Below the pieces are notes generated by a model. The model was not told where the DNA came from. It saw nothing but the letters and a program-made list of their open reading frames with translations, and made no database searches. The position numbers and the translations under genes were made by a program. From Auanema rhodensis (taxonomy: Eukaryota > Animalia > Nematoda), in the NCBI GenBank assembly GCA_964057225.1, contig OZ059894.1, forward strand, positions 24,056,001 through 24,120,000: 64,000 nt of DNA, in the 5' to 3' direction. How positions within the stretch are numbered: position 1 is the stretch's first letter; each line of letters begins with the position of its first letter. Below are positions 13,501 through 64,000 of this stretch, in pieces.

Positions 13501-13728
13501 ATTTTTATTGATATTGGTGCATGGTAACCATGACTTTGAAATTTACGTGAACTTTAATTTATGCTAATTAAATGTACACGTGATGTGCCCTTGGTATGTA
13601 ACTCGCTTCACGTGAAAGATAAAGAGATGCGGTTTTCAAAATTAGATTCCCCATGTCCATATTAGTCTAAAAACAAATTTTTATTGATATTGGTGCATGG
13701 TAACCATGACTTTGAAATTTACGTGAAC

Positions 13729-30976: not shown

Positions 30977-33900
30977 TTTAATTTATGCTAATTAAATGTA
31001 CACGTGATGTGCACTTGGTATGTAACTCGCTTCACGTGAAAGATAAAGAGATGCGGTTTTCAAAATTAGATTCCCCATGTCCATATCAGTCTAAAAACAA
31101 ATTTTTATTGATATTGGTTCATGGTAACCATGACTTTGAAATTTACGTGAACTTTAATTTATGCTAATTAAATGTACACGTGATGTGCACTTGGTATGTA
31201 ACTCGCTTCACGTGAAAGATAAAGAGATGCGGTTTTCAAAATTAGATTCCCCATGTCCATATTAGTCTAAAAACAAATTTTTATTGATATTGGTTCATGG
31301 TAACCATGACTTTGAAATTTACGTGAACTTTGATTTATGCTAATTAAATGTACACGTGATGTGCACTTGGTATGTAACTCGCTTCACGTGAAAGATAAAG
31401 AGATGCGGTTTTCAAAATTAGATTCCCCATGTCCATATTAGTCTAAAAACAAATTTTTATTGATATTGGTGCATGGTAACCATGACTTTGAAATTTACGT
31501 GAACTTTAATTTATGCTAATTAAATGTACACGTGATGTGCCCTCGGTATGTAACTCGCTTCACGTGAAAGATAAAGAGATGCGGTTTTCAAAATTAGATT
31601 CCCCATGTCCATATTAGTCTAAAAACAAATTTTTATTGATATTGGTGCATGGTAACCATGACTTTGAAATTTACGTGAACTTTAATTTATGCTAATTAAA
31701 TGTACACGTGATGTGCACTTGGTATGTAACTCGCTTCACGTGGAAGATAAAGAAATGCGGTTTTCAAAATTAGATTCCCCATGTCCATATTAGTCTAAAA
31801 ACAAATTTTTTTTGATATTGGTGCATGGTAACCATGACTTTGAAATTTACGTGAACTTTAATTTATGCTAATTAAATGTACACGTGATGTGCACTCGGTA
31901 TGTAACTCGCTTCACGTAAAAGATAAAGAGATGCGGTTTTCAAAATTAAATTTCCCATGTCCATATTAGTCTAAAAACAAATTTTTATTGATATTGGTGC
32001 ATGGTAACCATGACTTTGAAATTTACGTGAACTTTAATTTATGCTAATTAAATGTACACGTGATGTGCACTTGGTATGTAACTCGCTTCACGTGAAAGAT
32101 AAAGAGATGCGGTTTTCAAAATTAGATTCCCCATGTCCATATTAGTCTAAAAACAAATTTTTATTGATATTGGTTCATGGTAACCATGATTTTGAAATTT
32201 ACGTGAACTTTAATTTATGCTAATTAAATGTACACGTGATGTGCACTTGGTATGTAACTCGCTTCACGTGAAAGATAAAGAGATGCGGTTTTCAAAATTA
32301 GATTCCCCCTGTCCATATTAGTCTAAAAACAAATTTTTATTGATATTGGTTCATGGTAACCATGACTTTGAAATTTACGTGAACTTTAATTTATGCTAAT
32401 TAAATGTACACGTGATGTGCACTTGGTATGTAACTCGCTTCACGTGAAAGATAAAGAGATGCGGTTTTCAAAATTAGATTCCCCATGTCCATATTAGTCT
32501 AAAAACAAATTTTTATTGATATTGGTTCATGGTAACCATGACTTTGAAATTTACGTGAACTTTAATTTATGCTAATTAAATGTACACGTGATGTGCACTT
32601 GGTATGTAACTCGCTTCACGTGAAAGATAAAGAGATGCGGTTTTCAAAATTAGATTCCCCATGTCCATATTAGTCTAAAAACAAATTTTTATTGATATTG
32701 GTTCATGGTAACCATGACTTTGAAATTTACGTGAACTTTAATTTATGCTAATTAAATGTACACGTGATGTGCACTTGGTATGTAACTCGCTTCACGTGAA
32801 AGATAAAGAGATGCGGTTTTCAAAATTAGATTCCCCATGTCCATATTAGTCTAAAAACAAATTTTTATTGATATTGGTGCATGGTAACCATGACTTTGAA
32901 ATTTACGTGAACTTTAATTTATGTCAATTAAATGTACACGTGATGTGCACTTGGTATGTAACTCGCTTCACGTGAAAGATAAAGAGATGCGGTTTTCAAA
33001 ATTAGATTCCCCATGTCCATATTAGTCTAAAAACAAATTTTTATTGATATTGGTTCATGGTAACCATGACTTTGAAATTTACGTGAACTTCAATTTATGC
33101 TAATTAAATGTACACGTGATGTGCACTTGGTATGTAACTCGCTTCACGTGAAAGATGAAGAGATGCGGTTTTCAAAATTAGATTCCCTATGTCCATATTA
33201 GTCTAAAAACAAATTTTTATTGATATTGGTTCATGGTAACCATGACTTTGAAATTTACGTGAACTTTAATTTATGCTAATTAAATGTACACGTGATGTGC
33301 ACTTGGTATGTAACTCGCTTCACGTGAAAGATAAAGAGATGCGGTTTTCAAAATTAGATTCCCCATGTCCATATTAGTCTAAAAACAAATTTTTATTGAT
33401 ATTGGTGCATGGTAACCATGACTTTGAAATTTACGTGAACTTTAATTTATGCTAATTAAATGTACACGTGATGTGCCCTCGGTATGTAACTCGCTTCACG
33501 TGAAAGATAAAGAGATGCGGTTTTCAAAATTAGATTCCCCATGTCCATATTAGTCTAAAAACAAATTTTTATTGATATTGGTGCATGGTAACCATGACTT
33601 TGAAATTTACGTGAACTTTAATTTATGCTAATTAAATGTACACGTGATGTGCACTTGGTATGTAACTCGCTTCACGTGAAAGATAAAGAAATGCGGTTTT
33701 CAAAATTAGATTCCCCATGTCCATATTAGTCTAAAAACAAATTTTTATTGATATTGGTGCATGGTAACCATGACTTTGAAATTTACGTGAACTTTAATTT
33801 ATGCTAATTAAATGTACACGTGATGTGCACTCGGTATGTAACTCGCTTCACGTAAAAGATAAAGAGATGCGGTTTTCAAAATTAAATTTCCCATGTCCAT

Positions 33901-36900: not shown

Positions 36901-39900
36901 GAAAACAAATTTTTATTGATATTGGTTCATGATAACCATGACTTTGAAATTTACGTGAACTTTAATTTATGCTAATTAAATGTACACGTGTTGTGCACTT
37001 GGTATGTAACTCGCTTCACGTGAAAGATAAAGAGATGCGGTTTTCAAAATTAGATTCCCCATGTCCATATTAGTCTAAAAACAAATTTTTATTGATATTG
37101 GTGCATGGTAACCATGACTTTGAAATTTACGTGAACTTTAATTTATGCTAATTAAATGTACACGTGATGTGCCCTCGGTATGTAACTCGCTTCACGTGAA
37201 AGATAAAGAGATGCGGTTTTCAAAATTAGATTCCCCATGTCCATATTAGTCTAAAAACAAATTTTTATTGATATTGGTGCATGGTAACCATGACTTTGAA
37301 ATTTACGTGAACTTTAATTTATGCTAATTAAATGTACACGTGATGTGCACTTGGTATGTAACTCGCTTCACGTGAAAGATAAAGAGATGCGGTTTTCAAA
37401 ATTAGATTCCCCATGTCCATATTAGTCTAAAAACAAATTTTTATTGATATTGGTTCATGGTAACCATGACTTTGAAATTTACGTGAACTTCAATTTATGC
37501 TAATTAAATGTACACGTGATGTGCACTTGGTATGTAACTCGCTTCACGTGAAAGATGAAGAGATGCGGTTTTCAAAATTAGATTTCCTATGTCCATATTA
37601 GTCTAAAAACAAATTTTTATTGATATTGGTTCATGGTAACCATGACTTTGAAATTTACGTGAACTTTAATTTATGCTAATTAAATGTACACGTGATGTGC
37701 ACTTGGTATGTAACTCGCTTCACGTGAAAGATAAAGAGATGCGGTTTTCAAAATTAGATTCCCCATGTCCATATTAGTCTAAAAACAAATTTTTATTGAT
37801 ATTGGTTCATGGTAACCATGACTTTGAAATTTACGTGAACTTTAATTTATGCTAATTAAATGTACACGTGATGTGCACTTGGTATGTAACTCGCTTCACG
37901 TGAAAGATAAAGAGATGCGGTTTTCAAAATTAGATTCCCCATGTCCATATTAGTCTAAAAACAAATTTTTATTGATATTGGTTCATGGTAACCATGACTT
38001 TGAAATTTACGTGAACTTCAATTTATGCTAATTAAATGTACACGTGATGTGCACTTGGTATGTAACTCGCTTCACGTGAAAGATGAAGAGATGCGGTTTT
38101 CAAAATTAGATTCCCTATGTCCATATTAGTCTAAAAACAAATTTTTATTGATATTGGTTCATGGTAACCATGACTTTGAAATTTACGTGAACTTTAATTT
38201 ATGCTAATTAAATGTACACGTGATGTGCTCTTGGTATGTAACTCGCTTCACGTGAAAGATAAAGAGATGCGGTTTTCAAAATTAGATTCCCCATGTCCAT
38301 ATTAGTCTAAAAACAAATTTTTATTGATATTGGTTCATGGTAACCATGACTTTGAAATTTACGTGAACTTCAATTTATGCTAATTAAATGTACACGTGAT
38401 GTGCACTTGGTATGTAACTCGCTTCACGTGAAAGATGAAGAGATGCGGTTTTCAAAATTAGATTCCCTATGTCCATATTAGTCTAAAAACAAATTTTTAT
38501 TGATATTGGTTCATGGTAACCATGACTTTGAAATTTACGTGAACTTTAATTTATGCTAATTAAATGTACACGTGATGTGCACTTGGTATGTAACTCGCTT
38601 CACGTGAAAGATAAAGAGATGCGGTTTTCAAAATTAGATTCCCCATGTCCATATTAGTCTAAAAACAAATTTTTATTGATATTGGTTCATGGTAACCATG
38701 ACTTTGAAATTTACGTGAACTTTAATTTATGCTAATTAAATGTACACGTGATGTGCACTTGGTATGTAACTCGCTTCACGTGAAAGATAAAGAGATGCGG
38801 TTTTCAAAATTAGATTCCCCATGTCCATATTAGTCTAAAAACAAATTTTTATTGATATTGGTGCATGGTAACCATGACTTTGAAATTTACGTGAACTTTA
38901 ATTTATGCTAATTAAATGTACACGTGATGTGCACTTGGTATGTAACTCGCTTCACGTGAAAGATAAAGAGATGCGGTTTTCAAAATTAGATTCCCCATGT
39001 CCATATCAGTCTAAAAACAAATTTTTATTGATATTGGTTCATGGTAACCATGACTTTGAAATTTACGTGAACTTTAATTTATGCTAATTAAATGTACACG
39101 TGATGTGCACTTGGTATGTAACTCGCTTCACGTGAAAGATAAAGAGATGCGGTTTTCAAAATTAGATTCCCCATGTCCATATTAGTCTAAAAACAAATTT
39201 TTATTGATATTGGTTCATGGTAACCATGACTTTGAAATTTACGTGAACTTTGATTTATGCTAATTAAATGTACACGTGATGTGCACTTGGTATGTAACTC
39301 GCTTCACGTGAAAGATAAAGAGATGCGGTTTTCAAAATTAGATTCCCCATGTCCATATTAGTCTAAAAACAAATTTTTATTGATATTGGTGCATGGTAAC
39401 CATGACTTTGAAATTTACGTGAACTTTAATTTATGCTAATTAAATGTACACGTGATGTGCCCTCGGTATGTAACTCGCTTCACGTGAAAGATAAAGAGAT
39501 GCGGTTTTCAAAATTAGATTCCCCATGTCCATATTAGTCTAAAAACAAATTTTTATTGATATTGGTGCATGGTAACCATGACTTTGAAATTTACGTGAAC
39601 TTTAATTTATGCTAATTAAATGTACACGTGATGTGCACTTGGTATGTAACTCGCTTCACGTGGAAGATAAAGAAATGCGGTTTTCAAAATTAGATTCCCC
39701 ATGTCCATATTAGTCTAAAAACAAATTTTTATTGATATTGGTGCATGGTAACCATGACTTTGAAATTTACGTGAACTTTAATTTATGCTAATTAAATGTA
39801 CACGTGATGTGCACTCGGTATGTAACTCGCTTCACGTAAAAGATAAAGAGATGCGGTTTTCAAAATTAAATTTCCCATGTCCATATTAGTCTAAAAACAA

Positions 39901-40500
39901 ATTTTTATTGATATTGGTGCATGGTAACCATGACTTTGAAATTTACGTGAACTTTAATTTATGCTAATTAAATGTACACGTGATGTGCACTTGGTATGTA
40001 ACTCGCTTCACGTGAAAGATAAAGAGATGCGGTTTTCAAAATTAGATTCCCCATGTCCATATTAGTCTAAAAACAAATTTTTATTGATATTGGTTCATGG
40101 TAACCATGACTTTGAAATTTACGTGAACTTTAATTTATGCTAATTAAATGTACACGTGATGTGCACTTGGTATGTAACTCGCTTCACGTGAAAGATAAAG
40201 AGATGCGGTTTTCAAAATTAGATTCCCCCTGTCCATATTAGTCTAAAAACAAATTTTTATTGATATTGGTTCATGGTAACCATGACTTTGAAATTTACGT
40301 GAACTTTAATTTATGCTAATTAAATGTACACGTGATGTGCACTTGGTATGTAACTCGCTTCACGTGAAAGATAAAGAGATGCGGTTTTCAAAATTAGATT
40401 CCCCATGTCCATATTAGTCTAAAAACAAATTTTTATTGATATTGGTTCATGGTAACCATGACTTTGAAATTTACGTGAACTTTAATTTATGCTAATTAAA
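28000..40500 (+). repeat. Duplicated block at 45-monomer (7920 bp) offset (about 28.0-32.6 kb repeated at about 35.9-40.5 kb)
   Basis: SNP pairs 28546/36466, 29071/36991, 31087/39007, 31332/39252, 31743/39663. The two identical ORFs are 7920 bp apart. Boundaries are approximate. Confidence 0.85.
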
Positions 40501-43500
40501 TGTACACGTGATGTGCACTTGGTATGTAACTCGCTTCACGTGAAAGATAAAGAGATGCGGTTTTCAAAATTAGATTCCCCATGTCCATATTAGTCTAAAA
40601 ACAAATTTTTATTGATATTGGTGCATGGTAACCATGACTTTGAAATTTACGTGAACTTTAATTTATGCTAATTAAATGTACACGTGATGTGCACTTGGTA
40701 TGTAACTCGCTTCACGTGAAAGATAAAGAGATGCGGTTTTCAAAATTAGATTCCCCATGTCCATATTAGTCTAAAAACAAATTTTTATTGATATTGGTTC
40801 ATGGTAACCATGACTTTGAAATTTACGTGAACTTCAATTTATGCTAATTAAATGTACACGTGATGTGCACTTGGTATGTAACTCGCTTCACGTGAAAGAT
40901 GAAGAGATGCGGTTTTCAAAATTAGATTCCCTATGTCCATATTAGTCTAAAAACAAATTTTTATTGATATTGGTTCATGGTAACCATGACTTTGAAATTT
41001 ACGTGAACTTTAATTTATGCTAATTAAATGTACACGTGATGTGCACTTGGTATGTAACTCGCTTCACGTGAAAGATAAAGAGATGCGGTTTTCAAAATTA
41101 GATTCCCCATGTCCATATTAGTCTAAAAACAAATTTTTATTGATATTGGTGCATGGTAACCATGACTTTGAAATTTACGTGAACTTTAATTTATGCTAAT
41201 TAAATGTACACGTGATGTGCCCTCGGTATGTAACTCGCTTCACGTGAAAGATAAAGAGATGCGGTTTTCAAAATTAGATTCCCCATGTCCATATTAGTCT
41301 AAAAACAAATTTTTATTGATATTGGTGCATGGTAACCATGACTTTGAAATTTACGTGAACTTTAATTTATGCTAATTAAATGTACACGTGATGTGCACTC
41401 GGTATGTAACTCGCTTCACGTAAAAGATAAAGAGATGCGGTTTTCAAAATTAAATTTCCCATGTCCATATTAGTCTAAAAACAAATTTTTATTGATATTG
41501 GTGCATGGTAACCATGACTTTGAAATTTACGTGAACTTTAATTTATGCTAATTAAATGTACACGTGATGTGCACTTGGTATGTAACTCGCTTCACGTGAA
41601 AGATAAAGAGATGCGGTTTTCAAAATTAGATTCCCCATGTCCATATTAGTCTAAAAACAAATTTTTATTGATATTGGTTCATGGTAACCATGACTTTGAA
41701 ATTTACGTGAACTTTAATTTATGCTAATTAAATGTACACGTGATGTGCACTTGGTATGTAACTCGCTTCACGTGAAAGATAAAGAGATGCGGTTTTCAAA
41801 ATTAGATTCCCCCTGTCCATATTAGTCTAAAAACAAATTTTTATTGATATTGGTTCATGGTAACCATGACTTTGAAATTTACGTGAACTTTAATTTATGC
41901 TAATTAAATGTACACGTGATGTGCACTTGGTATGTAACTCGCTTCACGTGAAAGATAAAGAGATGCGGTTTTCAAAATTAGATTCCCCATGTCCATATTA
42001 GTCTAAAAACAAATTTTTATTGATATTGGTTCATGGTAACCATGACTTTGAAATTTACGTGAACTTTAATTTATGCTAATTAAATGTACACGTGATGTGC
42101 ACTTGGTATGTAACTCGCTTCACGTGAAAGATAAAGAGATGCGGTTTTCAAAATTAGATTCCCCATGTCCATATTAGTCTAAAAACAAATTTTTATTGAT
42201 ATTGGTGCATGGTAACCATGACTTTGAAATTTACGTGAACTTTAATTTATGCTAATTAAATGTACACGTGATGTGCACTTGGTATGTAACTCGCTTCACG
42301 TGAAAGATAAAGAGATGCGGTTTTCAAAATTAGATTCCCCATGTCCATATTAGTCTAAAAACAAATTTTTATTGATATTGGTTCATGGTAACCATGACTT
42401 TGAAATTTACGTGAACTTCAATTTATGCTAATTAAATGTACACGTGATGTGCACTTGGTATGTAACTCGCTTCACGTGAAAGATGAAGAGATGCGGTTTT
42501 CAAAATTAGATTCCCTATGTCCATATTAGTCTAAAAACAAATTTTTATTGATATTGGTTCATGGTAACCATGACTTTGAAATTTACGTGAACTTTAATTT
42601 ATGCTAATTAAATGTACACGTGATGTGCACTTGGTATGTAACTCGCTTCACGTGAAAGATAAAGAGATGCGGTTTTCAAAATTAGATTCCCCATGTCCAT
42701 ATTAGTCTAAAAACAAATTTTTATTGATATTGGTGCATGGTAACCATGACTTTGAAATTTACGTGAACTTTAATTTATGCTAATTAAATGTACACGTGAT
42801 GTGCCCTCGGTATGTAACTCGCTTCACGTGAAAGATAAAGAGATGCGGTTTTCAAAATTAGATTCCCCATGTCCATATTAGTCTAAAAACAAATTTTTAT
42901 TGATATTGGTGCATGGTAACCATGACTTTGAAATTTACGTGAACTTTAATTTATGCTAATTAAATGTACACGTGATGTGCACTCGGTATGTAACTCGCTT
43001 CACGTAAAAGATAAAGAGATGCGGTTTTCAAAATTAAATTTCCCATGTCCATATTAGTCTAAAAACAAATTTTTATTGATATTGGTGCATGGTAACCATG
43101 ACTTTGAAATTTACGTGAACTTTAATTTATGCTAATTAAATGTACACGTGATGTGCACTTGGTATGTAACTCGCTTCACGTGAAAGATAAAGAGATGCGG
43201 TTTTCAAAATTAGATTCCCCATGTCCATATTAGTCTAAAAACAAATTTTTATTGATATTGGTTCATGGTAACCATGACTTTGAAATTTACGTGAACTTTA
43301 ATTTATGCTAATTAAATGTACACGTGATGTGCACTTGGTATGTAACTCGCTTCACGTGAAAGATAAAGAGATGCGGTTTTCAAAATTAGATTCCCCCTGT
43401 CCATATTAGTCTAAAAACAAATTTTTATTGATATTGGTTCATGGTAACCATGACTTTGAAATTTACGTGAACTTTAATTTATGCTAATTAAATGTACACG

Positions 43501-44350
43501 TGATGTGCACTTGGTATGTAACTCGCTTCACGTGAAAGATAAAGAGATGCGGTTTTCAAAATTAGATTCCCCATGTCCATATTAGTCTAAAAACAAATTT
43601 TTATTGATATTGGTTCATGGTAACCATGACTTTGAAATTTACGTGAACTTTAATTTATGCTAATTAAATGTACACGTGATGTGCACTTGGTATGTAACTC
43701 GCTTCACGTGAAAGATAGAGAGATGCGGTTTTCAAAATTAGATTCCCCATGTCCATATTAGTCTAAAAACAAATTTTTATTGATATTGGTGCATGGTAAC
43801 CATGACTTTGAAATTTACGTGAACTTTAATTTATGCTAATTAAATGTACACGTGATGTGCACTTGGTATGTAACTCGCTTCACGTGAAAGATAAAGAGAT
43901 GCGGTTTTCAAAATTAGATTCCCCATGTCCATATTAGTCTAAAAACAAATTTTTATTGATATTGGTTCATGGTAACCATGACTTTGAAATTTACGTGAAC
44001 TTCAATTTATGCTAATTAAATGTACACGTGATGTGCACTTGGTATGTAACTCGCTTCACGTGAAAGATGAAGAGATGCGGTTTTCAAAATTAGATTCCCT
44101 ATGTCCATATTAGTCTAAAAACAAATTTTTATTGATATTGGTTCATGGTAACTATGACTTTGAAATTTACGTGAACTTTAATTTATGCTAATTAAATGTA
44201 CACGTGATGTGCACTTGGTATGTAACTCGCTTCACGTGAAAGATAAAGAGATGCGGTTTTCAAAATTAGATTCCCCATGTCCATATTAGTCTAAAAACAA
44301 ATTTTTATTGATATTGGTTCATGGTAACCATGACTTTGAAATTTACGTGA
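39777..44350 (+). repeat. Local 9-monomer (1584 bp) higher-order repeat, about 3 copies
   Basis: The T40C+G62A+G93A+C97T monomer occurs at 39816, 41400 and 42984; A101C occurs at 40229, 41813 and 43397. Confidence 0.85.
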
Positions 44351-47300: not shown

Positions 47301-48400
47301 TGATATTGGTTCATGGTAACCATGACTTTGAAATTTACGTGAACTTTAATTTATGCTAATTAAATGTACACGTGATGTGCACTTGGTATGTAACTCGCTT
47401 CACGTGAAAGATAAAGAGATGCGGTTTTCAAAATTAGATTCCCCATGTCCATATTAGTCTAAAAACAAATTTTTATTGATATTGGTTCATGGTAACCATG
47501 ACTTTGAAATTTACGTGAACTTTAATTTATGCTAATTAAATGTACACGTGATGTGCACTTGGTATGTAACTCGCTTCACGTGAAAGATAGAGAGATGCGG
47601 TTTTCAAAATTAGATTCCCCATGTCCATATTAGTCTAAAAACAAATTTTTATTGATATTGGTGCATGGTAACCATGACTTTGAAATTTACGTGAACTTTA
47701 ATTTATGCTAATTAAATGTACACGTGATGTGCACTTGGTATGTAACTCGCTTCACGTGAAAGATAAAGAGATGCGGTTTTCAAAATTAGATTCCCCATGT
47801 CCATATTAGTCTAAAAACAAATTTTTATTGATATTGGTTCATGGTAACCATGACTTTGAAATTTACGTGAACTTCAATTTATGCTAATTAAATGTACACG
47901 TGATGTGCACTTGGTATGTAACTCGCTTCACGTGAAAGATGAAGAGATGCGGTTTTCAAAATTAGATTCCCTATGTCCATATTAGTCTAAAAACAAATTT
48001 TTATTGATATTGGTTCATGGTAACTATGACTTTGAAATTTACGTGAACTTTAATTTATGCTAATTAAATGTACACGTGATGTGCACTTGGTATGTAACTC
48101 GCTTCACGTGAAAGATAAAGAGATGCGGTTTTCAAAATTAGATTCCCCATGTCCATATTAGTCTAAAAACAAATTTTTATTGATATTGGTTCATGGTAAC
48201 CATGACTTTGAAATTTACGTGAACTTCAATTTATGCTAATTAAATGTACACGTGATGTGCACTTGGTATGTAACTCGCTTCACGTGAAAGATAAAGAGAT
48301 GCGGTTTTCAAAATTAGATTCCCCATGTCCATATTAGTCTAAAAACAAATTTTTATTGATATTGGTGCATGGTAACCATGACTTTGAAATTTACGTGAAC

Positions 48401-51400
48401 TTTAATTTATGCTAATTAAATGTACACGTGATGTGCACTCGGTATGTAACTCGCTTCACGTAAAAGATAAAGAGATGCGGTTTTCAAAATTAAATTTCCC
48501 ATGTCCATATTAGTCTAAAAACAAATTTTTATTGATATTGGTTCATGGTAACCATGACTTTGAAATTTACGTGAACTTTAATTTATGCTAATTAAATGTA
48601 CACGTGATGTGCACTTGGTATGTAACTCGCTTCACGTGAAAGATAAAGAGATGCGGTTTTCAAAATTAGATTCCCCATGTCCATATTAGTCTAAAAACAA
48701 ATTTTTATTGATATTGGTTCATGGTAACCATGACTTTGAAATTTACGTGAACTTTAATTTATGCTAATTAAATGTACACGTGATGTGCACTTGGTATGTA
48801 ACTCGCTTCACGTGAAAGATAGAGAGATGCGGTTTTCAAAATTAGATTCCCCATGTCCATATTAGTCTAAAAACAAATTTTTATTGATATTGGTGCATGG
48901 TAACCATGACTTTGAAATTTACGTGAACTTTAATTTATGCTAATTAAATGTACACGTGATGTGCACTTGGTATGTAACTCGCTTCACGTGAAAGATAAAG
49001 AGATGCGGTTTTCAAAATTAGATTCCCCATGTCCATATTAGTCTAAAAACAAATTTTTATTGATATTGGTTCATGGTAACCATGACTTTGAAATTTACGT
49101 GAACTTTAATTTATGCTAATTAAATGTACACGTGATGTGCACTTGGTATGTAACTCGCTTCACGTGAAAGATGAAGAGATGCGGTTTTCAAAATTAGATT
49201 CCCTATGTCCATATTAGTCTAAAAACAAATTTTTATTGATATTGGTTCATGGTAACTATGACTTTGAAATTTACGTGAACTTTAATTTATGCTAATTAAA
49301 TGTACACGTGATGTGCACTTGGTATGTAACTCGCTTCACGTGAAAGATAAAGAGATGCGGTTTTCAAAATTAGATTCCCCATGTCCATATTAGTCTAAAA
49401 ACAAATTTTTATTGATATTGGTTCATGGTAACCATGACTTTGAAATTTACGTGAACTTCAATTTATGCTAATTAAATGTACACGTGATGTGCACTTGGTA
49501 TGTAACTCGCTTCACGTGAAAGATAAAGAGATGCGGTTTTCAAAATTAGATTCCCCATGTCCATATTAGTCTAAAAACAAATTTTTATTGATATTGGTTC
49601 ATGGTAACCATGACTTTGAAATTTACGTGAACTTCAATTTATGCTAATTAAATGTACACGTGATGTGCACTTGGTATGTAACTCGCTTCACGTGAAAGAT
49701 AAAGAGATGCGGTTTTCAAAATTAGATTCCCCATGTCCATATTAGTCTAAAAACAAATTTTTATTGATATTGGTGCATGGTAACCATGACTTTGAAATTT
49801 ACGTGAACTTTAATTTATGCTAATTAAATGTACACGTGATGTGCACTCGGTATGTAACTCGCTTCACGTAAAAGATAAAGAGATGCGGTTTTCAAAATTA
49901 AATTTCCCATGTCCATATTAGTCTAAAAACAAATTTTTATTGATATTGGTTCATGGTAACCATGACTTTGAAATTTACGTGAACTTTAATTTATGCTAAT
50001 TAAATGTACACGTGATGTGCACTTGGTATGTAACTCGCTTCACGTGAAAGATAAAGAGATGCGGTTTTCAAAATTAGATTCCCCATGTCCATATTAGTCT
50101 AAAAACAAATTTTTATTGATATTGGTTCATGGTAACCATGACTTTGAAATTTACGTGAACTTTAATTTATGCTAATTAAATGTACACGTGATGTGCACTT
50201 GGTATGTAACTCGCTTCACGTGAAAGATAGAGAGATGCGGTTTTCAAAATTAGATTCCCCATGTCCATATTAGTCTAAAAACAAATTTTTATTGATATTG
50301 GTGCATGGTAACCATGACTTTGAAATTTACGTGAACTTTAATTTATGCTAATTAAATGTACACGTGATGTGCACTTGGTATGTAACTCGCTTCACGTGAA
50401 AGATAAAGAGATGCGGTTTTCAAAATTAGATTCCCCATGTCCATATTAGTCTAAAAACAAATTTTTATTGATATTGGTTCATGGTAACCATGACTTTGAA
50501 ATTTACGTGAACTTTAATTTATGCTAATTAAATGTACACGTGATGTGCACTTGGTATGTAACTCGCTTCACGTGAAAGATGAAGAGATGCGGTTTTCAAA
50601 ATTAGATTCCCTATGTCCATATTAGTCTAAAAACAAATTTTTATTGATATTGGTTCATGGTAACTATGACTTTGAAATTTACGTGAACTTTAATTTATGC
50701 TAATTAAATGTACACGTGATGTGCACTTGGTATGTAACTCGCTTCACGTGAAAGATAAAGAGATGCGGTTTTCAAAATTAGATTCCCCATGTCCATATTA
50801 GTCTAAAAACAAATTTTTATTGATATTGGTTCATGGTAACCATGACTTTGAAATTTACGTGAACTTCAATTTATGCTAATTAAATGTACACGTGATGTGC
50901 ACTTGGTATGTAACTCGCTTCACGTGAAAGATAAAGAGATGCGGTTTTCAAAATTAGATTCCCCATGTCCATATTAGTCTAAAAACAAATTTTTATTGAT
51001 ATTGGTTCATGGTAACCATGACTTTGAAATTTACGTGAACTTCAATTTATGCTAATTAAATGTACACGTGATGTGCACTTGGTATGTAACTCGCTTCACG
51101 TGAAAGATAAAGAGATGCGGTTTTCAAAATTAGATTCCCCATGTCCATATTAGTCTAAAAACAAATTTTTATTGATATTGGTGCATGGTAACCATGACTT
51201 TGAAATTTACGTGAACTTTAATTTATGCTAATTAAATGTACACGTGATGTGCACTCGGTATGTAACTCGCTTCACGTAAAAGATAAAGAGATGCGGTTTT
51301 CAAAATTAAATTTCCCATGTCCATATTAGTCTAAAAACAAATTTTTATTGATATTGGTTCATGGTAACCATGACTTTGAAATTTACGTGAACTTTAATTT

Positions 51401-52400
51401 ATGCTAATTAAATGTACACGTGATGTGCACTTGGTATGTAACTCGCTTCACGTGAAAGATAAAGAGATGCGGTTTTCAAAATTAGATTCCCCATGTCCAT
51501 ATTAGTCTAAAAACAAATTTTTATTGATATTGGTTCATGGTAACCATGACTTTGAAATTTACGTGAACTTTAATTTATGCTAATTAAATGTACACGTGAT
51601 GTGCACTTGGTATGTAACTCGCTTCACGTGAAAGATAGAGAGATGCGGTTTTCAAAATTAGATTCCCCATGTCCATATTAGTCTAAAAACAAATTTTTAT
51701 TGATATTGGTGCATGGTAACCATGACTTTGAAATTTACGTGAACTTTAATTTATGCTAATTAAATGTACACGTGATGTGCACTTGGTATGTAACTCGCTT
51801 CACGTGAAAGATAAAGAGATGCGGTTTTCAAAATTAGATTCCCCATGTCCATATTAGTCTAAAAACAAATTTTTATTGATATTGGTTCATGGTAACCATG
51901 ACTTTGAAATTTACGTGAACTTCAATTTATGCTAATTAAATGTACACGTGATGTGCACTTGGTATGTAACTCGCTTCACGTGAAAGATGAAGAGATGCGG
52001 TTTTCAAAATTAGATTCCCTATGTCCATATTAGTCTAAAAACAAATTTTTATTGATATTGGTTCATGGTAACTATGACTTTGAAATTTACGTGAACTTTA
52101 ATTTATGCTAATTAAATGTACACGTGATGTGCACTTGGTATGTAACTCGCTTCACGTGAAAGATAAAGAGATGCGGTTTTCAAAATTAGATTCCCCATGT
52201 CCATATTAGTCTAAAAACAAATTTTTATTGATATTGGTTCATGGTAACCATGACTTTGAAATTTACGTGAACTTCAATTTATGCTAATTAAATGTACACG
52301 TGATGTGCACTTGGTATGTAACTCGCTTCACGTGAAAGATAAAGAGATGCGGTTTTCAAAATTAGATTCCCCATGTCCATATTAGTCTAAAAACAAATTT
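48401..52400 (+). repeat. Local 8-monomer (1408 bp) higher-order repeat, about 3 copies
   Basis: T40C at 48440/49848/51256, GATAGAG at 48822/50230/51638, AACTATG at 49257/50665/52073. Confidence 0.85.
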
Positions 52401-55400
52401 TTATTGATATTGGTTCATGGTAACCATGACTTTGAAATTTACGTGAACTTTAATTTATGCTAATTAAATGTACACGTGATGTGCACTTGGTATGTAACTC
52501 GCTTCACGTGAAAGATAAAGAGATGCGGTTTTCAAAATTAGATTCCCCATGTCCATATTAGTCTAAAAACAAATTTTTATTGATATTGGTGCATGGTAAC
52601 CATGACTTTGAAATTTACGTGAACTTTAATTTATGCTAATTAAATGTACACGTGATGTGCACTTGGTATGTAACTCGCTTCACGTGAAAGATAAAGAGAT
52701 GCGGTTTTCAAAATTAGATTCCCCATGTCCATATTAGTCTAAAAACAAATTTTTATTGATATTGGTTCATGGTAACCATGACTTTGAAATTTACGTGAAC
52801 TTCAATTTATGCTAATTAAATGTACACGTGATGTGCACTTGGTATGTAACTCGCTTCACGTGAAAGATAAAGAGATGCGGTTTTCAAAATTAGATTCCCC
52901 ATGTCCATATTAGTCTAAAAACAAATTTTTATTGATATTGGTTCATGGTAACCATGACTTTGAAATTTACGTGAACTTCAATTTATGCTAATTAAATGTA
53001 CACGTGATGTGCACTTGGTATGTAACTCGCTTCACGTGAAAGATAAAGAGATGCGGTTTTCAAAATTAGATTCCCCATGTCCATATTAGTCTAAAAACAA
53101 ATTTTTATTGATATTGGTTCATGGTAACCATGACTTTGAAATTTACGTGAACTTCAATTTATGCTAATTAAATGTACACGTGATGTGCACTTGGTATGTA
53201 ACTCGCTTCACGTGAAAGATAAAGAGATGCGGTTTTCAAAATTAGATTCCCCATGTCCATATTAGTCTAAAAACAAATTTTTATTGATATTGGTTCATGG
53301 TAACCATGACTTTGAAATTTACGTGAACTTTAATTTATGCTAATTAAATGTACACGTGATGTGCACTTGGTATGTAACTCGCTTCACGTGAAAGATAAAG
53401 AGATGCGGTTTTCAAAATTAGATTCCCCATGTCCATATTAGTCTAAAAACAAATTTTTATTGATATTGGTGCATGGTAACCATGACTTTGAAATTTACGT
53501 GAACTTTAATTTATGCTAATTAAATGTACACGTGATGTGCACTTGGTATGTAACTCGCTTCACGTGAAAGATAAAGAGATGCGGTTTTCAAAATTAGATT
53601 CCCCATGTCCATATTAGTCTAAAAACAAATTTTTATTGATATTGGTTCATGGTAACCATGACTTTGAAATTTACGTGAACTTTAATTTATGCTAATTAAA
53701 TGTACACGTGATGTGCACTTGGTATGTAACTCGCTTCACGTGAAAGATAAAGAGATGCGGTTTTCAAAATTAGATTCCCCATGTCCATATTAGTCTAAAA
53801 ATAAATTTTTATTGATATTGGTTCATGGTAACCATGACTTTGAAATTTACGTGAACTTCAATTTATGCTAATTAAATGTAAACGTGATGTGCACTTGGTA
53901 TGTAACTCGCTTCACGTGAAAGATAAAGAGATGCGGTTTCCAAAATTAGATTCCCCATGTCCATATTAGTCTAAAAACAAATTTTTATTGATATTGGTGC
54001 ATGGTAACCATGACTTTGAAATTTACGTGAACTTTAATTTATGCTAATTAAATGTACACGTGATGTGCACTTGGTATGTAACTCGCTTCACGTGAACGAT
54101 AAAGAGATGCGGTTTTCAAAATTAGATTCCCCATGTCCATATTAGTCTAAAAACAAATTTTTATTGATATTGGTTCATGGTAACCATGACTTTGAAATTT
54201 ACGTGAACTTTAATTTATGCTAATTAAATGTACACGTGATGTGCACTTGGTATGTAACTCGCTTCACGTGAAAGATAAAGAGATGCGGTTTTCAAAATTA
54301 GATTCCCCATGTCCATATTAGTCTAAAAACAAATTTTTATTGATATTGGTGCATGGTAACCATGACTTTGAAATTTACGTGAACTTTAATTTATGCTAAT
54401 TAAATGTACACGTGATGTGCACTTGGTATGTAACTCGCTTCACGTGAAAGATAAAGAGATGCGGTTTTCAAAATTAGATTCCCCATGTCCATATTAGTCT
54501 AAAAACAAATTTTTATTGATATTGGTTCATGGTAACCATGACTTTGAAATTTACGTGAACTTTAATTTATGCTAATTAAATGTACACGTGATGTGCACTT
54601 GGTATGTAACTCGCTTCACGTGAAAGATAAAGAGATGCGGTTTTCAAAATTAGATTCCCCATGTCCATATTAGTCTAAAAACAAATTTTTATTGATATTG
54701 GTGCATGGTAACCATGACTTTGAAATTTACGTGAACTTTAATTTATGCTAATTAAATGTACACGTGATGTGCACTTGGTATGTAACTCGCTTCACGTGAA
54801 AGATAAAGAGATGCGGTTTTCAAAATTAGATTCCCCATGTCCATATTAGTCTAAAAACAAATTTTTATTGATATTGGTTCATGGTAACCATGACTTTGAA
54901 ATTTACGTGAACTTTAATTTATGCTAATTAAATGTACACGTGATGTGCACTTGGTATGTAACTCGCTTCACGTGAAAGATAAAGAGATGCGGTTTTCAAA
55001 ATTAGATTCCCCATGTCCATATTAGTCTAAAAACAAGTTTTTATTGATATTGGTTCATGGTAACCATGACTTTGAAATTTACGTGAACTTCAATTTATGC
55101 TAATTAAATGTACACGTGATGTGCACTTGGTATGTAACTCGCTTCACGTGAAAGATAAAGAGATGCGGTTTCCAAAATTAGATTCCCCATGTCCATATTA
55201 GTCTAAAAACAAATTTTTATTGATATTGGTGCATGGTAACCATGACTTTGAAATTTACGTGAACTTTAATTTATGCTAATTAAATGTACACGTGATGTGC
55301 ACTTGGTATGTAACTCGCTTCACGTGAACGATAAAGAGATGCGGTTTTCAAAATTAGATTCCCCATGTCCATATTAGTCTAAAAACAAATTTTTATTGAT

Positions 55401-58378
55401 ATTGGTTCATGGTAACCATGACTTTGAAATTTACGTGAACTTTAATTTATGCTAATTAAATGTACACGTGATGTGCACTTGGTATGTAACTCGCTTCACG
55501 TGAAAGATAAAGAGATGCGGTTTTCAAAATAAGATTCCCCATGTCCATATTAGTCTAAAAACAAATTTTTATTGATATTGGTGCATGGTAACCATGACTT
55601 TGAAATTTACGTGAACTTTAATTTATGCTAATTAAATGTACACGTGATGTGCACTTGGTATGTAACTCGCTTCACGTGAAAGATAAAGAGATGCGGTTTT
55701 CAAAATTAGATTCCCCATGTCCATATTAGTCTAAAAACAAATTTTTATTGATATTGGTTCATGGTAACCATGACTTTGAAATTTACGTGAACTTTAATTT
55801 ATGCTAATTAAATGTACACGTGATGTGCACTTGGTATGTAACTCGCTTCACGTGAAAGATAAAGAGATGCGGTTTTCAAAATTAGATTCCCCATGTCCAT
55901 ATTAGTCTAAAAACAAATTTTTATTGATATTGGTGCATGGTAACCATGACTTTGAAATTTACGTGAACTTTAATTTATGCTAATTAAATGTACACGTGAT
56001 GTGCCCTTGGTATGTAACTCGCTTCACGTAAAAGATAAAGAGATGCGGTTTTCAAAATTAGATTCCCCATGTCCATATTAGTCTAAAAACAAATTTTTAT
56101 TGATATTGGTGCATGGTAACCATGACTTTGAAATTTACGTGAACTTTAATTTATGCTAATTAAATGTACACGTGATGTGCACTTGGTATGTAACTCGCTT
56201 CACGTGAAAGATAAAGAGATGCGGTTTTCAAAATTAAATTTCCCATGTCCATATTAGTCTAAAAACAAATTTTTATTGATATTGGTGCATGGTAACCATG
56301 ACTTTGGAATTTACGTGAACTTTAATTTATGTTAATTAAATGTACACGTGATGTGCACTTGGTATGTAACTCGCTTCACGTGAAAGATAAAGAGATGCGT
56401 TTTTCAAAATTAGATTCCCCATGTCCATATTAGTCTAAAAACAAATTTTTATTGATATTGATTCATGGTAACCATGACTTTGAAATTTACGTGAACTTTA
56501 ATTTATGCTAATTAAATGTACACGTGATGTGCACTTGGTATGTAACTCGCTTCACGTGAAAGATGAAGAGATGCGGTTTTCAAAATTAGATTCCCCATGT
56601 CCATATTAGTCTAAAAACAAATTTTTATTGATATTGGTTCATGGTAACCATGACTTTGAAATTTACGTGAACTTTAATTTATGCTAATTAAATGTACACG
56701 TGATGTGCACTTGGTATGTAACTCGCTTCACGTGAAAGATAAAGAGATGCGGTTTTCAAAATTAGATTCCCCATGTCCATATTAGTCTAAAAACAAATTT
56801 TTATTGATATTGGTTCATGGTAACCATGACTTTGAAATTTACGTGAACTTCAATTTATGCTAATTAAATGTACACGTGATGTGCACTTGGTATGTAACTC
56901 GCTTCACGTGAAAGATAAAGAGATGCGGTTTTCAAAATTAGATTCCCCATGTCCATATTAGTCTAAAAACAAATTTTTATTGATATTGGTGCATGGTAAC
57001 CATGACTTTGAAATTTACGTGAACTTTAATTTATGCTAATTAAATGTACACGTGATGTGCACTTGGTATGTAACTCGCTTCACGTGAAAGATAAAGAGAT
57101 GCGGTTTTCAAAATTAGATTCCCCATGTCCATATTAGTCTAAAAACAAATTTTTATTGATATTGGTTCATGGTAACCATGACTTTGAAATTTACGTGAAC
57201 TTTAATTTATGCTAATTAAATGTACACGTGATGTGCACTTGGTATGTAACTCGCTTCACGTGAAAGATAAAGAGATGCGGTTTTCAAAATTAGATTCCCC
57301 ATGTCCATATTAGTCTAAAAACAAATTTTTATTGATATTGGTGCATGGTAACCATGACTTTGAAATTTACGTGAACTTTAATTTATGCTAATTAAATGTA
57401 CACGTGATGTGCACTTGGTATGTAACTCGCTTCACGTGAAAGATAAAGAGATGCGGTTTTCAAAATTAGATTCCCCATGTCCATATTAGTCTAAAAACAA
57501 ATTTTTATTGATATTGGTTCATGGTAACCATGACTTTGAAATTTACGTGAACTTCAATTTATGCTAATTAAATGTACACGTGATGTGCACTTGGTATGTA
57601 ACTCGCTTCACGTGAAAGATAAAGAGATGCGGTTTTCAAAATTAGATTCCCCATGTCCATATTAGTCTAAAAACAAATTTTTATTGATATTGGTGCATGG
57701 TAACCATGACTTTGAAATTTACGTGAACTTTAATTTATGCTATTTAAATGTACACGTGATGTGCACTTGGTATGTAACTCGCTTCACGTGAAAGATAAAG
57801 AGATGCGGTTTTCAAAATTAAATTTCCCATGTCCATATTAGTCTAAAAACAAATTTTTATTGATAGTGGTGCATGGTAACCATGACTTTGAAATTTACGT
57901 GAACTTTAATTTATGCTAATTAAATGTACACGTGATGTGCACTTGGTATGTAACTCGCTTCACGTGAAAGATAAAGAGATGCGGTTTTCAAAATTAGATT
58001 CCCCATGTCCATATTAGTCTAAAAACAAATTTTTATTGATATTGGTTCATGGTAACCATGACTTTGAAATTTACGTGAACTTTAATTTATGCTAATTAAA
58101 TGTACACGTGATGTGCACTTGGTATGTAACTCGCTTCACGTGAAAGATAAAGAGATGCGGTTTTCAAAATTAGATTCCCCATGTCCATATTAGTCTAAAA
58201 ACAAATTTTTATTGATATTGGTGCATGGTAACCATGACTTTGAAATTTACGTGAACTTTAATTTATGCTATTTAAATGTACACGTGATGTGCACTTGGTA
58301 TGTAACTCGCTTCACGTGAAAGATAAAGAGATGCGGTTTTCAAAATTAGATTCCCTATGTCCATATTAGTCTAAAAAC

Positions 58379-58422
58379 AAATTTACGTGAACTTTAGCAT
58401 AAATTGAAGTTCACGTAAATTT
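58379..58422. other. Inversion (strand-switch) junction with a 40-bp monomer deletion, microhomologies and a 16-bp stem/12-nt loop inverted repeat
   Basis: The last + monomer jumps from AAATTT (monomer 123-128) to AAATTT (163-168) at 58379-58384. It continues ACGTGAACTTTA and joins the - strand arm through a shared TTA (58394-58396). AAATTTACGTGAACTT (58379-58394) is the exact reverse complement of AAGTTCACGTAAATTT (58407-58422). Confidence 0.93.
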
Positions 58423-61400
58423 CAAAGTCATGGTTACCATGAACCAATATCAATAAAAATTTGTTTTTAGACTAATATGGACATGGGGAATCTAATTTTG
58501 AAAACCGCATCTCTTTATCTTTCACGTGAAGCGAGTTACATACCAAGTGCACATCACGTGTACATTTAATTAGCATAAATTAAAGTTCACGTAAATTTCA
58601 AAGTCATGGTTACCATGCACCAATATCAATAAAAATTTGTTTTTAGACTAATATGGACATGGGGAATCTAATTTTGAAAACCGCATCTCTTTATCTTTCA
58701 CGTGAAGCGAGTTACATACCAAGTGCACATCACGTGTACATTTAATTAGCATAAATTAAAGTTCACGTAAATTTCAAAGTCATGGTTACCATGAACCAAT
58801 ATCAATAAAAATTTGTTTTTAGACTAATATGGACATGGGGAATCTAATTTTGAAAACCGCATCTCTTTATCTTTCACGTGAAGCGAGTTACATACCAAGT
58901 GCACATCACGTGTACATTTAATTAGCATAAATTAAAGTTCACGTAAATTTCAAAGTCATGGTTACCATGCACCACTATCAATAAAAATTTGTTTTTAGAC
59001 TAATATGGACATGGGAAATTTAATTTTGAAAACCGCATCTCTTTATCTTTCACGTGAAGCGAGTTACATACCAAGTGCACATCACGTGTACATTTAAATA
59101 GCATAAATTAAAGTTCACGTAAATTTCAAAGTCATGGTTACCATGCACCAATATCAATAAAAATTTGTTTTTAGACTAATATGGACATGGGGAATCTAAT
59201 TTTGAAAACCGCATCTCTTTATCTTTCACGTGAAGCGAGTTACATACCAAGTGCACATCACGTGTACATTTAATTAGCATAAATTAAAGTTCACGTAAAT
59301 TTCAAAGTCATGGTTACCATGCACCAATATCAATAAAAATTTGTTTTTAGACTAATATGGACATGGGGAATCTAATTTTGAAAACCGCATCTCTGTATCT
59401 TTCACGTGAAGCGAGTTACATACCAAGTGCACATCACGTGTACATTTAATTAGCATAAATTAAAGTTCACGTAAATTTCAAAGTCATGGTTACCATGAAC
59501 CAATATCAATAAAAATTTGTTTTTAGACTAATATGGACATGGGGAATCTAATTTTGAAAACCGCATCTCTTTATCTTTCACGTGAAGCGAGTTACATACC
59601 AAGTGCACATCACGTGTACATTTAATTAGCATAAATTAAAGTTCACGTAAATTTCAAAGTCATGGTTACCATGCACCAATATCAATAAAAATTTGTTTTT
59701 AGACTAATATGGACATGGGGAATCTAATTTTGAAAACCGCATCTCTTTATCTTTCACGTGAAGCGAGTTACATACCAAGTGCACAACACGTGTACATTTA
59801 ATTAGCATAAATTGAAGTTCACGTAAATTTCAAAGTCATGGTTACCATGAACCAATATCAATAAAAATTTGTTTTTAGACTAATATGGACATGGGGAATC
59901 TAATTTTGAAAACCGCATCTCTTTATCTTTCACGTGAAGCGAGTTACATACCAAGTGCACATCACGTGTACATTTAATTAGCATAAATTAAAGTTCACGT
60001 AAATTTCAAAGTCATGGTTACCATGCACCAATATCAATAAAAATTTGTTTTTAGACTAATATGGACATGGGGAATCTAATTTTGAAAACCGCATCTCTTT
60101 ATCTTTCACGTGAAGCGAGTTACATACCAAGTGCACATCACGTGTACATTTAATTAGCATAAATTAAAGTTCACGTAAATTTCAAAGTCATGGTTACCAT
60201 GAACCAATATCAATAAAAATTTGTTTTTAGACTAATATGGACATGGGGAATCTAATTTTGAAAACCGCATCTCTTTATCTTTCACGTGAAGCGAGTTACA
60301 TACCAAGTGCACATCACGTGTACATTTAATTAGCATAAATTAAAGTTCACGTAAATTTCAAAGTCATGGTTACCATGCACCAATATCAATAAAAATTTGT
60401 TTTTAGACTAATATGGACATGGGGAATCTAATTTTGAAAACCGCATCTCTTTATCTTTCACGTGAAGCGAGTTACATACCAAGTGCACATCACGTGTACA
60501 TTTAATTAGCATAAATTGAAGTTCACGTAAATTTCAAAGTCATGGTTACCATGAACCAATATCAATAAAAATTTGTTTTTAGACTAATATGGACATGGGG
60601 AATCTAATTTTGAAAACCGCATCTCTTTATCTTTCACGTGAAGCGAGTTACATACCAAGTGCACATCACGTGTACATTTAATTAGCATAAATTAAAGTTC
60701 ACGTAAATTTCAAAGTCATGGTTACCATGAACCAATATCAATAAAAATTTGTTTTTAGACTAATATGGACATGGGGAATCTAATTTTGAAAACCGCATCT
60801 CTTCATCTTTCACGTGAAGCGAGTTACATACCAAGTGCACATCACGTGTACATTTAATTAGCATAAATTAAAGTTCACGTAAATTTCAAAGTCATGGTTA
60901 CCATGAATCAATATCAATAAAAATTTGTTTTTAGACTAATATGGACATGGGGAATCTAATTTTGAAAAACGCATCTCTTTATCTTTCACGTGAAGCGAGT
61001 TACATACCAAGTGCACATCACGTGTACATTTAATTAACATAAATTAAAGTTCACGTAAATTCCAAAGTCATGGTTACCATGCACCAATATCAATAAAAAT
61101 TTGTTTTTAGACTAATATGGACATGGGAAATTTAATTTTGAAAACCGCATCTCTTTATCTTTCACGTGAAGCGAGTTACATACCAAGTGCACATCACGTG
61201 TACATTTAATTAGCATAAATTAAAGTTCACGTAAATTTCAAAGTCATGGTTACCATGCACCAATATCAATAAAAATTTGTTTTTAGACTAATATGGACAT
61301 GGGGAATCTAATTTTGAAAACCGCATCTCTTTATCTTTTACGTGAAGCGAGTTACATACCAAGGGCACATCACGTGTACATTTAATTAGCATAAATTAAA

Positions 61401-64000
61401 GTTCACGTAAATTTCAAAGTCATGGTTACCATGCACCAATATCAATAAAAATTTGTTTTTAGACTAATATGGACATGGGGAATCTAATTTTGAAAACCGC
61501 ATCTCTTTATCTTTCACGTGAAGCGAGTTACATACCAAGTGCACATCACGTGTACATTTAATTAGCATAAATTAAAGTTCACGTAAATTTCAAAGTCATG
61601 GTTACCATGAACCAATATCAATAAAAATTTGTTTTTAGACTAATATGGACATGGGGAATCTAATTTTGAAAACCGCATCTCTTTATCTTTCACGTGAAGC
61701 GAGTTACATACCAAGTGCACATCACGTGTACATTTAATTAGCATAAATTAAAGTTCACGTAAATTTCAAAGTCATGGTTACCATGCACCAATATCAATAA
61801 AAATTTGTTTTTAGACTAATATGGACATGGGGAATCTTATTTTGAAAACCGCATCTCTTTATCTTTCACGTGAAGCGAGTTACATACCAAGTGCACATCA
61901 CGTGTACATTTAATTAGCATAAATTAAAGTTCACGTAAATTTCAAAGTCATGGTTACCATGAACCAATATCAATAAAAATTTGTTTTTAGACTAATATGG
62001 ACATGGGGAATCTAATTTTGAAAACCGCATCTCTTTATCGTTCACGTGAAGCGAGTTACATACCAAGTGCACATCACGTGTACATTTAATTAGCATAAAT
62101 TAAAGTTCACGTAAATTTCAAAGTCATGGTTACCATGCACCAATATCAATAAAAATTTGTTTTTAGACTAATATGGACATGGGGAATCTAATTTTGGAAA
62201 CCGCATCTCTTTATCTTTCACGTGAAGCGAGTTACATACCAAGTGCACATCACGTGTACATTTAATTAGCATAAATTGAAGTTCACGTAAATTTCAAAGT
62301 CATGGTTACCATGAACCAATATCAATAAAAACTTGTTTTTAGACTAATATGGACATGGGGAATCTAATTTTGAAAACCGCATCTCTTTATCTTTCACGTG
62401 AAGCGAGTTACATACCAAGTGCACATCACGTGTACATTTAATTAGCATAAATTAAAGTTCACGTAAATTTCAAAGTCATGGTTACCATGAACCAATATCA
62501 ATAAAAATTTGTTTTTAGACTAATATGGACATGGGGAATCTAATTTTGAAAACCGCATCTCTTTATCTTTCACGTGAAGCGAGTTACATACCAAGTGCAC
62601 ATCACGTGTACATTTAATTAGCATAAATTAAAGTTCACGTAAATTTCAAAGTCATGGTTACCATGCACCAATATCAATAAAAATTTGTTTTTAGACTAAT
62701 ATGGACATGGGGAATCTAATTTTGAAAACCGCATCTCTTTATCTTTCACGTGAAGCGAGTTACATACCAAGTGCACATCACGTGTACATTTAATTAGCAT
62801 AAATTAAAGTTCACGTAAATTTCAAAGTCATGGTTACCATGAACCAATATCAATAAAAATTTGTTTTTAGACTAATATGGACATGGGGAATCTAATTTTG
62901 AAAACCGCATCTCTTTATCTTTCACGTGAAGCGAGTTACATACCAAGTGCACATCACGTGTACATTTAATTAGCATAAATTAAAGTTCACGTAAATTTCA
63001 AAGTCATGGTTACCATGCACCAATATCAATAAAAATTTGTTTTTAGACTAATATGGACATGGGGAATCTAATTTTGAAAACCGCATCTCTTTATCTTTCA
63101 CGTGAAGCGAGTTACATACCAAGTGCACATCACGTGTACATTTAATTAGCATAAATTAAAGTTCACGTAAATTTCAAAGTCATGGTTACCATGAACCAAT
63201 ATCAATAAAAATTTGTTTTTAGACTAATATGGACATGGGGAATCTAATTTTGAAAACCGCATCTCTTTATCGTTCACGTGAAGCGAGTTACATACCAAGT
63301 GCACATCACGTGTACATTTAATTAGCATAAATTAAAGTTCACGTAAATTTCAAAGTCATGGTTACCATGCACCAATATCAATAAAAATTTGTTTTTAGAC
63401 TAATATGGACATGGGGAATCTAATTTTGGAAACCGCATCTCTTTATCTTTCACGTGAAGCGAGTTACATACCAAGTGCACATCACGTTTACATTTAATTA
63501 GCATAAATTGAAGTTCACGTAAATTTCAAAGTCATGGTTACCATGAACCAATATCAATAAAAATTTATTTTTAGACTAATATGGACATGGGGAATCTAAT
63601 TTTGAAAACCGCATCTCTTTATCTTTCACGTGAAGCGAGTTACATACCAAGTGCACATCACGTGTACATTTAATTAGCATAAATTAAAGTTCACGTAAAT
63701 TTCAAAGTCATGGTTACCATGAACCAATATCAATAAAAATTTGTTTTTAGACTAATATGGACATGGGGAATCTAATTTTGAAAACCGCATCTCTTTATCT
63801 TTCACGTGAAGCGAGTTACATACCAAGTGCACATCACGTGTACATTTAATTAGCATAAATTAAAGTTCACGTAAATTTCAAAGTCATGGTTACCATGCAC
63901 CAATATCAATAAAAATTTGTTTTTAGACTAATATGGACATGGGGAATCTAATTTTGAAAACCGCATCTCTTTATCTTTCACGTGAAGCGAGTTACATACC
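58394..64000 (-). repeat. Same 176-bp satellite in inverted orientation (~32 monomers, continues past the window end)
   Basis: From 58394 the sequence reads TTAGCATAAATTGAAGTTCACGTAAATTTCAAAGTCATGGTTACCATG..., the reverse complement of the monomer. Phase recurs at 58441, 61081 and 63721 (2640-bp spacing). Confidence 0.99.

Follow-up and report, generated by a model that had tools for sequence, protein, structure and literature searches.

The DNA described here is a 64,000-nucleotide stretch of the nematode Auanema rhodense (Auanema rhodensis in GenBank; assembly GCA_964057225.1, contig OZ059894.1, positions 24,056,001 to 24,120,000 of the forward strand), referred to below as the window, in which a satellite array switches strand. 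Tandem Repeats Finder (TRF) described the whole 64-kb window as a single 176-bp tandem array, which runs on the + strand from 1 to 58384 (331.7 copies, 98% matches, 0% indels) and on the - strand from 58394 to 64000 (31.9 monomers), where it continues off the window end. The sign of both GC skew and AT skew flips in the bin at 58-60 kb. When the monomers were checked in phase against a column consensus, 331 consecutive + monomers (window 1-58256) were found to stay exactly in the 176-bp phase and to be free of indels; 103 of the 331 are identical to the consensus, and 61 distinct non-consensus states were counted. Monomer columns are counted from 0, so that the G/T dimorphism at column 142, with G in 120 monomers and T in 211, is the one placed at position 143 by the original prediction, an earlier reading of this same DNA.

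The identity of the satellite was established with the fluorescence in situ hybridization probe AT-1_Cy3 ('A-elim'), the sequence of which is given in the methods of a preprint on programmed DNA elimination in Auanema rhodense (10.64898/2026.08.27.747507). The probe matches the window exactly at 318 sites, each in its own monomer, and the satellite is therefore the AT-1 of that species. AT-1 is an autosomal-terminal repeat that is germline-restricted and removed from somatic cells (10.64898/2026.08.27.747507). The assembly described in that preprint was built from PacBio HiFi and Hi-C data of the inbred line APS4, with a reported coverage of ~236x in retained and ~29x in repeat-rich germline-restricted regions (10.64898/2026.08.27.747507).

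The relation between the two orientations was studied by comparing the reverse complement of 58394-64000 with the + array, ungapped, at every possible coordinate sum, that is, the position x of a + base added to the position y of its mirror partner. The sum 117369 ranked first, with 99.78% identity over 5016 bp, while the next best sum reached 99.1% and other in-register sums ~98.8%. All 11 mismatches at this sum were confined to x 57583-58384. The segments 53369-57582 and 59787-64000 (- strand) form a perfect mirror of 4214 bp, or 24 monomers, the outer limit of which is only the end of the window, and the same 4214-bp inverted pair was singled out by a repeat search. In any other inverted register the perfect runs were no longer than 933 bp, and random in-register 4214-bp windows inside the + array differed at a median of 61 sites. 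These data bear out two claims of the original prediction, namely that mirror-order copies exist at the sum 117369 and that all 24 states of the G/T dimorphism are mirrored, the latter being contained in the perfect 24-monomer mirror.

As the register right up to the junction, the sum 117369 was ruled out, its 11 mismatches in the inner 802 bp being at background level. A sum smaller by three monomers, 116841, was found to carry the mirror to the junction: x 57556-58270 is perfect against y 58571-59285, and only the pairs 58271/58570 and 58356/58485 differ. The inner mirrored segment of the right arm in this register is 58457-59285 (- strand). The inner 0.8 kb, which had been taken for an unmatched centre, is consequently mirrored as well. 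Over the 5016 bp of the gapped path through both registers there are 2 mismatches and a single gap, of 528 bp; this path defines 53369-58384 (+ strand) as the testable part of the left arm of the palindrome. Along this path 39 of 41 non-consensus sites are mirrored, as are 16 of 17 rare sites (<5%), in line with the earlier statement that rare variants reappear in mirror order on the - arm. Placing the same right-arm path on 299 control registers gave at least 40 mismatches in each case (median 70). Counted outward from the junction, left monomers L2-L4 equal right monomers R2-R4, L5 is a hybrid of R5 and R8, and L6 onward equals R9 onward. Because rare variants stand in mirror order about the strand switch, an inverted duplication of the junction-adjacent DNA is required.

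At 11441-14256, ~241 monomers distant, the mirrored segment has a direct paralogue that is older and diverged, in which the rare states 83C, 64C, 124G and 11T/79T/140A occur in the same order with a different monomer spacing. The second-best inverted register, sum 74953, is due to this paralogue.

The junction was then read base by base against the consensus. The last + monomer is 40 bp short (columns 128-167 are gone), with AAATTT at 58379-58384 (+ strand) as the 6-bp microhomology at this loss; in the consensus both columns 122-127 and columns 162-167 are AAATTT, 40 bp apart. The last unambiguous + bases (columns 168-175 and 0) occupy 58385-58393. The strand switch itself lies on TTA at 58394-58396, a 3-bp microhomology that fits + columns 1-3 as well as the complement of columns 14-12, and is followed at 58397-58404 (- strand) by an 8-nt loop, GCATAAAT (columns 11-4), from which the inverted array runs on unbroken. 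The consensus monomer natively contains an interrupted inverted repeat in columns 1-14, TTA(1-3)-ATTTATGC-TAA(12-14), and the strand switch falls exactly on it, with the 8-nt spacer retained once. The arrangement is the one expected of a fold-back or template switch, a single-copy central spacer between short inverted sequences that are already present in the un-rearranged monomer. The junction 31-mer quoted in the original prediction lies at 58376-58406 and occurs only once in the window.

Folding of the DNA at 58379-58422 gave a central hairpin with 16-bp perfect stems (58379-58394 and 58407-58422), a 12-nt loop and a predicted energy of -18.5 kcal/mol (z = -6.0), and a T.G pair between 58395 and 58406 allows the stem to lengthen to 18 bp. 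The G of this pair (58406) was considered as a mutation linked to the event and ruled out, since C at column 2 is a common variant, present in 67 of 332 monomers. Among the ~363 monomers of the 64 kb the 40-bp loss is the sole length change, and it lies 10 bp from the centre; for both reasons it is tied to the junction, whether to its formation or to a later stabilisation.

The two arms also differ by three monomers (528 bp) that are present in the inverted arm only, at 59286-59813 (- strand; placement ambiguous by 27 bp). The breakpoint of the corresponding in-register loss in the + arm lies within 57556-57582, a 27-bp interval in which both registers fit and which falls in the hybrid monomer L5. 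The three extra monomers carry 69C and 30T. The former state was found in 0 of 331 + monomers and the latter in three distant ones, and the extra monomers have no donor within the window and are not copies of their neighbours. Had the inverted arm gained the three monomers, several further mutations would have to be assumed, where 4888 bp elsewhere show none, and a loss in the + arm is therefore simpler. The two base differences are at 58271, where the left arm has a rare T at column 14 against the consensus A at mirror position 58570, and at 58356, with T at column 99 against the consensus C at 58485. Thus all asymmetries (the 40-bp loss, the 528-bp loss and the non-consensus 14T and 99T) are losses or changes of the + arm, and the + arm is the arm that lost DNA. 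The asymmetric centre of 600 nt supposed earlier resolves into the 8-nt loop, the 40-bp loss and the 528-bp loss, with both losses in the + arm. The older paralogue at 11.4-14.1 kb was tried for polarising the three-monomer indel and proved uninformative, as monomer numbers differ there too.

The origin of the two changed bases was explored further. Within the innermost + monomer (58257-58384), 14T is a state that recurs only three monomers away (57743, mirrored at 59098), and 99T is present in 35 monomers; for two random changes, the chance that both derived bases pre-exist in the array is ~0.015. These values hint at short templated patches rather than random error. As an explanation of 14T, we considered that the innermost left monomer had been re-templated from the one three units off, and set this aside because more switches are needed than are saved.

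Taken together with the mirror identity of the arms, this anatomy points to a real and recent germline inverted duplication within germline-restricted AT-1, which probably arose by fold-back or template switching at a short interrupted inverted repeat. In the proposed sequence of events, a 3' end (...GCTAA) would anneal to a TTA (TCA in this case) lying 8 nt behind it on the same strand or on the sister strand, after which synthesis would return along the array and generate a palindrome with an 8-nt loop. The 40-bp skip between the two AAATTT sequences, the 528-bp in-register skip and the two base changes could then be slips of a poorly processive polymerase after the switch, resembling microhomology-mediated break-induced replication. 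Should all of this have been a single event, the junction-side + arm would be the later, error-prone copy and the inverted arm its template. If instead the + arm was the template, secondary deletions would have struck it afterwards, and the same + side asymmetries, confined to the first 0.8 kb, may represent deletions that stabilised a long palindrome. Were a second strand switch to lie beyond the window, the whole would probably be a two-switch inverted triplication (direct-inverted-direct) of the origin-dependent inverted-repeat amplification (ODIRA) or DUP-TRP/INV-DUP type. The junction has the form expected of such triplications, a palindromic junction altered by asymmetric losses (40 bp at a 6-bp microhomology, and 528 bp at a distance of 0.8 kb). 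Under this model synthesis would proceed leftward, and slips made just after the second switch would land in the + arm, where the asymmetries are observed.

Several points weigh against a fold-back origin in the germline. The microhomology at the switch is just 3 bp long, and in the template monomer, a carrier of 2C, only two of the three bases match. Of a triplication, the window shows the direct copy on the left and the inverted one; a second switch and the predicted third copy would lie beyond it. The perfect identity of the outer 4.2 kb would be expected equally of an artefact, and in four short-read contig sets examined over 58250-58540 none of the contigs listed bridges 58384-58394. In the same four sets, depth across 58360-58399 falls from ~3e6 to 4e3-8e4, and among nine short-read runs from three studies none contained more than 4/7 of the sampled words (<=0.57). 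However, absence of the junction from short-read contigs is expected, because germline-only DNA is ~8-fold under-represented in whole worms (29x vs 236x), the runs comprise just 77-651 Mb and contigs drop rare branches. In one run a joint reported as 'opposite strands 58272 to 58394' was considered as support for the fold-back and rejected, as it is an ordinary - monomer placed in two pieces on the bi-oriented stretch.

An artefact of the library or assembly, in which the assembler was turned back along the array by a false join or by a chimeric long read of hairpin or fold-back type, with the two strands of a single molecule sequenced as one insert, is the alternative to which we give most weight, though it remains unlikely. 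Besides the identical outer arms and the missing short-read support, it would account for a centre that is a tiny hairpin, and satellites are hard to assemble. However, a duplex fold-back gives identical arms, whereas indels of 40 bp and 528 bp and 2 bases set the present arms apart, and the extra monomers carry 69C/30T lacking in the other arm (69C in 0/331). Arms that differ by indels with private variants are not the two strands of one duplex, so that the internal evidence makes a duplex fold-back in the library improbable. A random false join, for its part, would not be symmetric to within 40 bp, and the HiFi coverage of ~29x reported for the repeat-rich germline-restricted regions also speaks against an artefact. 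It is very doubtful that the structure is instead an old inverted repeat of the kind seen in sex-chromosome palindromes, with arms held identical by gene conversion from one to the other. Conversion would fit the near-zero divergence, and both bases that differ in the innermost monomer are also present elsewhere in the array, a hint of short templated patches. Conversion would still need an original inverted duplication to put the variants in mirror order, and with monomers ~98.5% alike it would not remain partner-specific over 28 monomers; moreover, direct duplicates in the + array that are equally perfect indicate recent copying rather than long-term homogenisation. Sex-chromosome palindromes share with this structure long inverted arms that are >99.9% identical, but they are old and have unique-sequence arms and kilobase spacers, and the AT-1 palindrome needs no conversion. 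Finally, a simple two-break inversion of an existing array segment, with arms alike because all monomers are alike, would explain the ~98.8% identity found in any inverted register. The mirror register stands out too far for this (2 vs at least 40 mismatches, with 16/17 rare variants mirrored), which leaves such an inversion a negligible probability and upholds the original view that the DNA next to the junction was duplicated in inverted orientation.

The inverted duplication carries information on its own age. Outside the innermost monomer no arm differences were found in 4888 bp, from which it follows that the event is young or that the arms are kept identical, as had been argued before from their near-zero divergence. 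Nematode mutation rates were assumed to be 2-5e-9 changes per site per generation. With 0 differences in 4888 bp, this assumed rate places the 95% upper bound on the age at ~0.6-1.5e5 generations.

Recent copying was also seen in direct orientation. The + array contains perfect direct duplicates of 4689 bp (lag 29 monomers), 3299 bp (18), 2606 bp (31), 2463 bp (8) and 2459 bp (9), located at window positions 21294-31086, 17216-23682, 1-8061, 48052-51923 and 39675-43717, respectively. As these direct duplicates are equally fresh, multi-kb copying is a general and ongoing property of the array. Inverted and direct fresh copies together mean that germline-restricted AT-1 arrays turn over by multi-kb copying in both orientations.

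Comparable junctions are known from other systems. Human constitutional fold-back inverted duplications have a spacer that lies between short inverted sequences (Hermetz et al. 2014, PMC3907307), and in yeast, secondary rearrangements resolve or stabilise hairpin-mediated fold-back inversions (Li, Putnam and Kolodner 2020, PMC7467729). The AT-1 palindrome shares with these an inverted copy beside its source, a single-copy spacer flanked by pre-existing short inverted sequences, and secondary rearrangements near the junction. It differs from them in lying inside a homogeneous tandem array, in having a spacer of just 8 nt, and in that no terminal deletion or dicentric outcome is visible within the window. 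Nematode chromosomes are holocentric. Inverted triplications have long palindromic junctions that are unstable and become secondarily rearranged (Brewer et al. 2024, PMC10766186). With these (ODIRA, PMC10766186, PMC10766183; DUP-TRP/INV-DUP, formed by replicative template switching) the AT-1 structure has in common the direct-inverted layout, a junction at a short interrupted inverted repeat, and a long palindromic junction changed by secondary asymmetric deletions; it differs in that the third direct copy and the second junction would lie beyond the window, and no replication origin is known here. The process is one already known, of which the AT-1 case is an unusually clean example in nematode germline-restricted DNA.

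For satellites in particular, almost nothing specific was found in the literature on strand switches explained as inverted duplications, and the Auanema rhodense preprint describes no strand switches in repeats, using 'inverted' once and not of repeat orientation (10.64898/2026.08.27.747507). In Tribolium, 'macro-dyad symmetries' have been described, multi-kb inversely oriented satellite subarrays reportedly documented only there (Veseljak et al. 2026, PMC13081366). Both systems have multi-kb inverted subarrays of a single satellite, with the potential to fold into hairpins or cruciforms. The Tribolium inversion sites fall into a few conserved, recurring types for which structural significance is proposed, and a fold-back origin is not named (PMC13081366), whereas in Auanema rhodense AT-1 a single, unique and young junction is resolved to the base. 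The present case adds a nematode to the inversely oriented satellite subarrays known from Tribolium. Satellite strand switches are common in complete assemblies, but their origin can seldom be read, as arms diverge or reshuffle. The AT-1 junction is young enough for a reading at base resolution, comprising the native 3-bp/8-nt repeat, the 40-bp microhomology-flanked loss and the in-register loss of three monomers.

It could be that polarity switches in the eliminated satellites of Auanema rhodense recur through replication-linked inverted triplication, and that the resulting palindromes serve as sources of hairpin or double-stranded RNA, or as cruciform-prone marks or organisers of germline-restricted chromatin, rather than being neutral scars. 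If so, macro-dyad architecture would extend from Tribolium to a nematode that discards this DNA. We regard this functional reading as a long shot, and note that the observed anatomy is equally predicted by a neutral accident.

Some further features of the array were recorded. The G/T dimorphism at column 142 has no periodicity (r = 0.04 at lag 1), and a dimeric higher-order repeat based on it was ruled out for want of autocorrelation. Monomers of the 2C/68G/99T type occur in 35 copies at irregular but repeating spacings (window 14081-51921), a pattern of nested duplications and not of a fixed higher-order repeat. The consensus monomer (for example 58081-58256) is full of short palindromes, including CACGTG twice, TTCACGTGAA and TCATGGT-A-ACCATGA. 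The last of these sits within the 40 bp lost at the junction, and the strand switch uses the weaker TTA...TAA pair.

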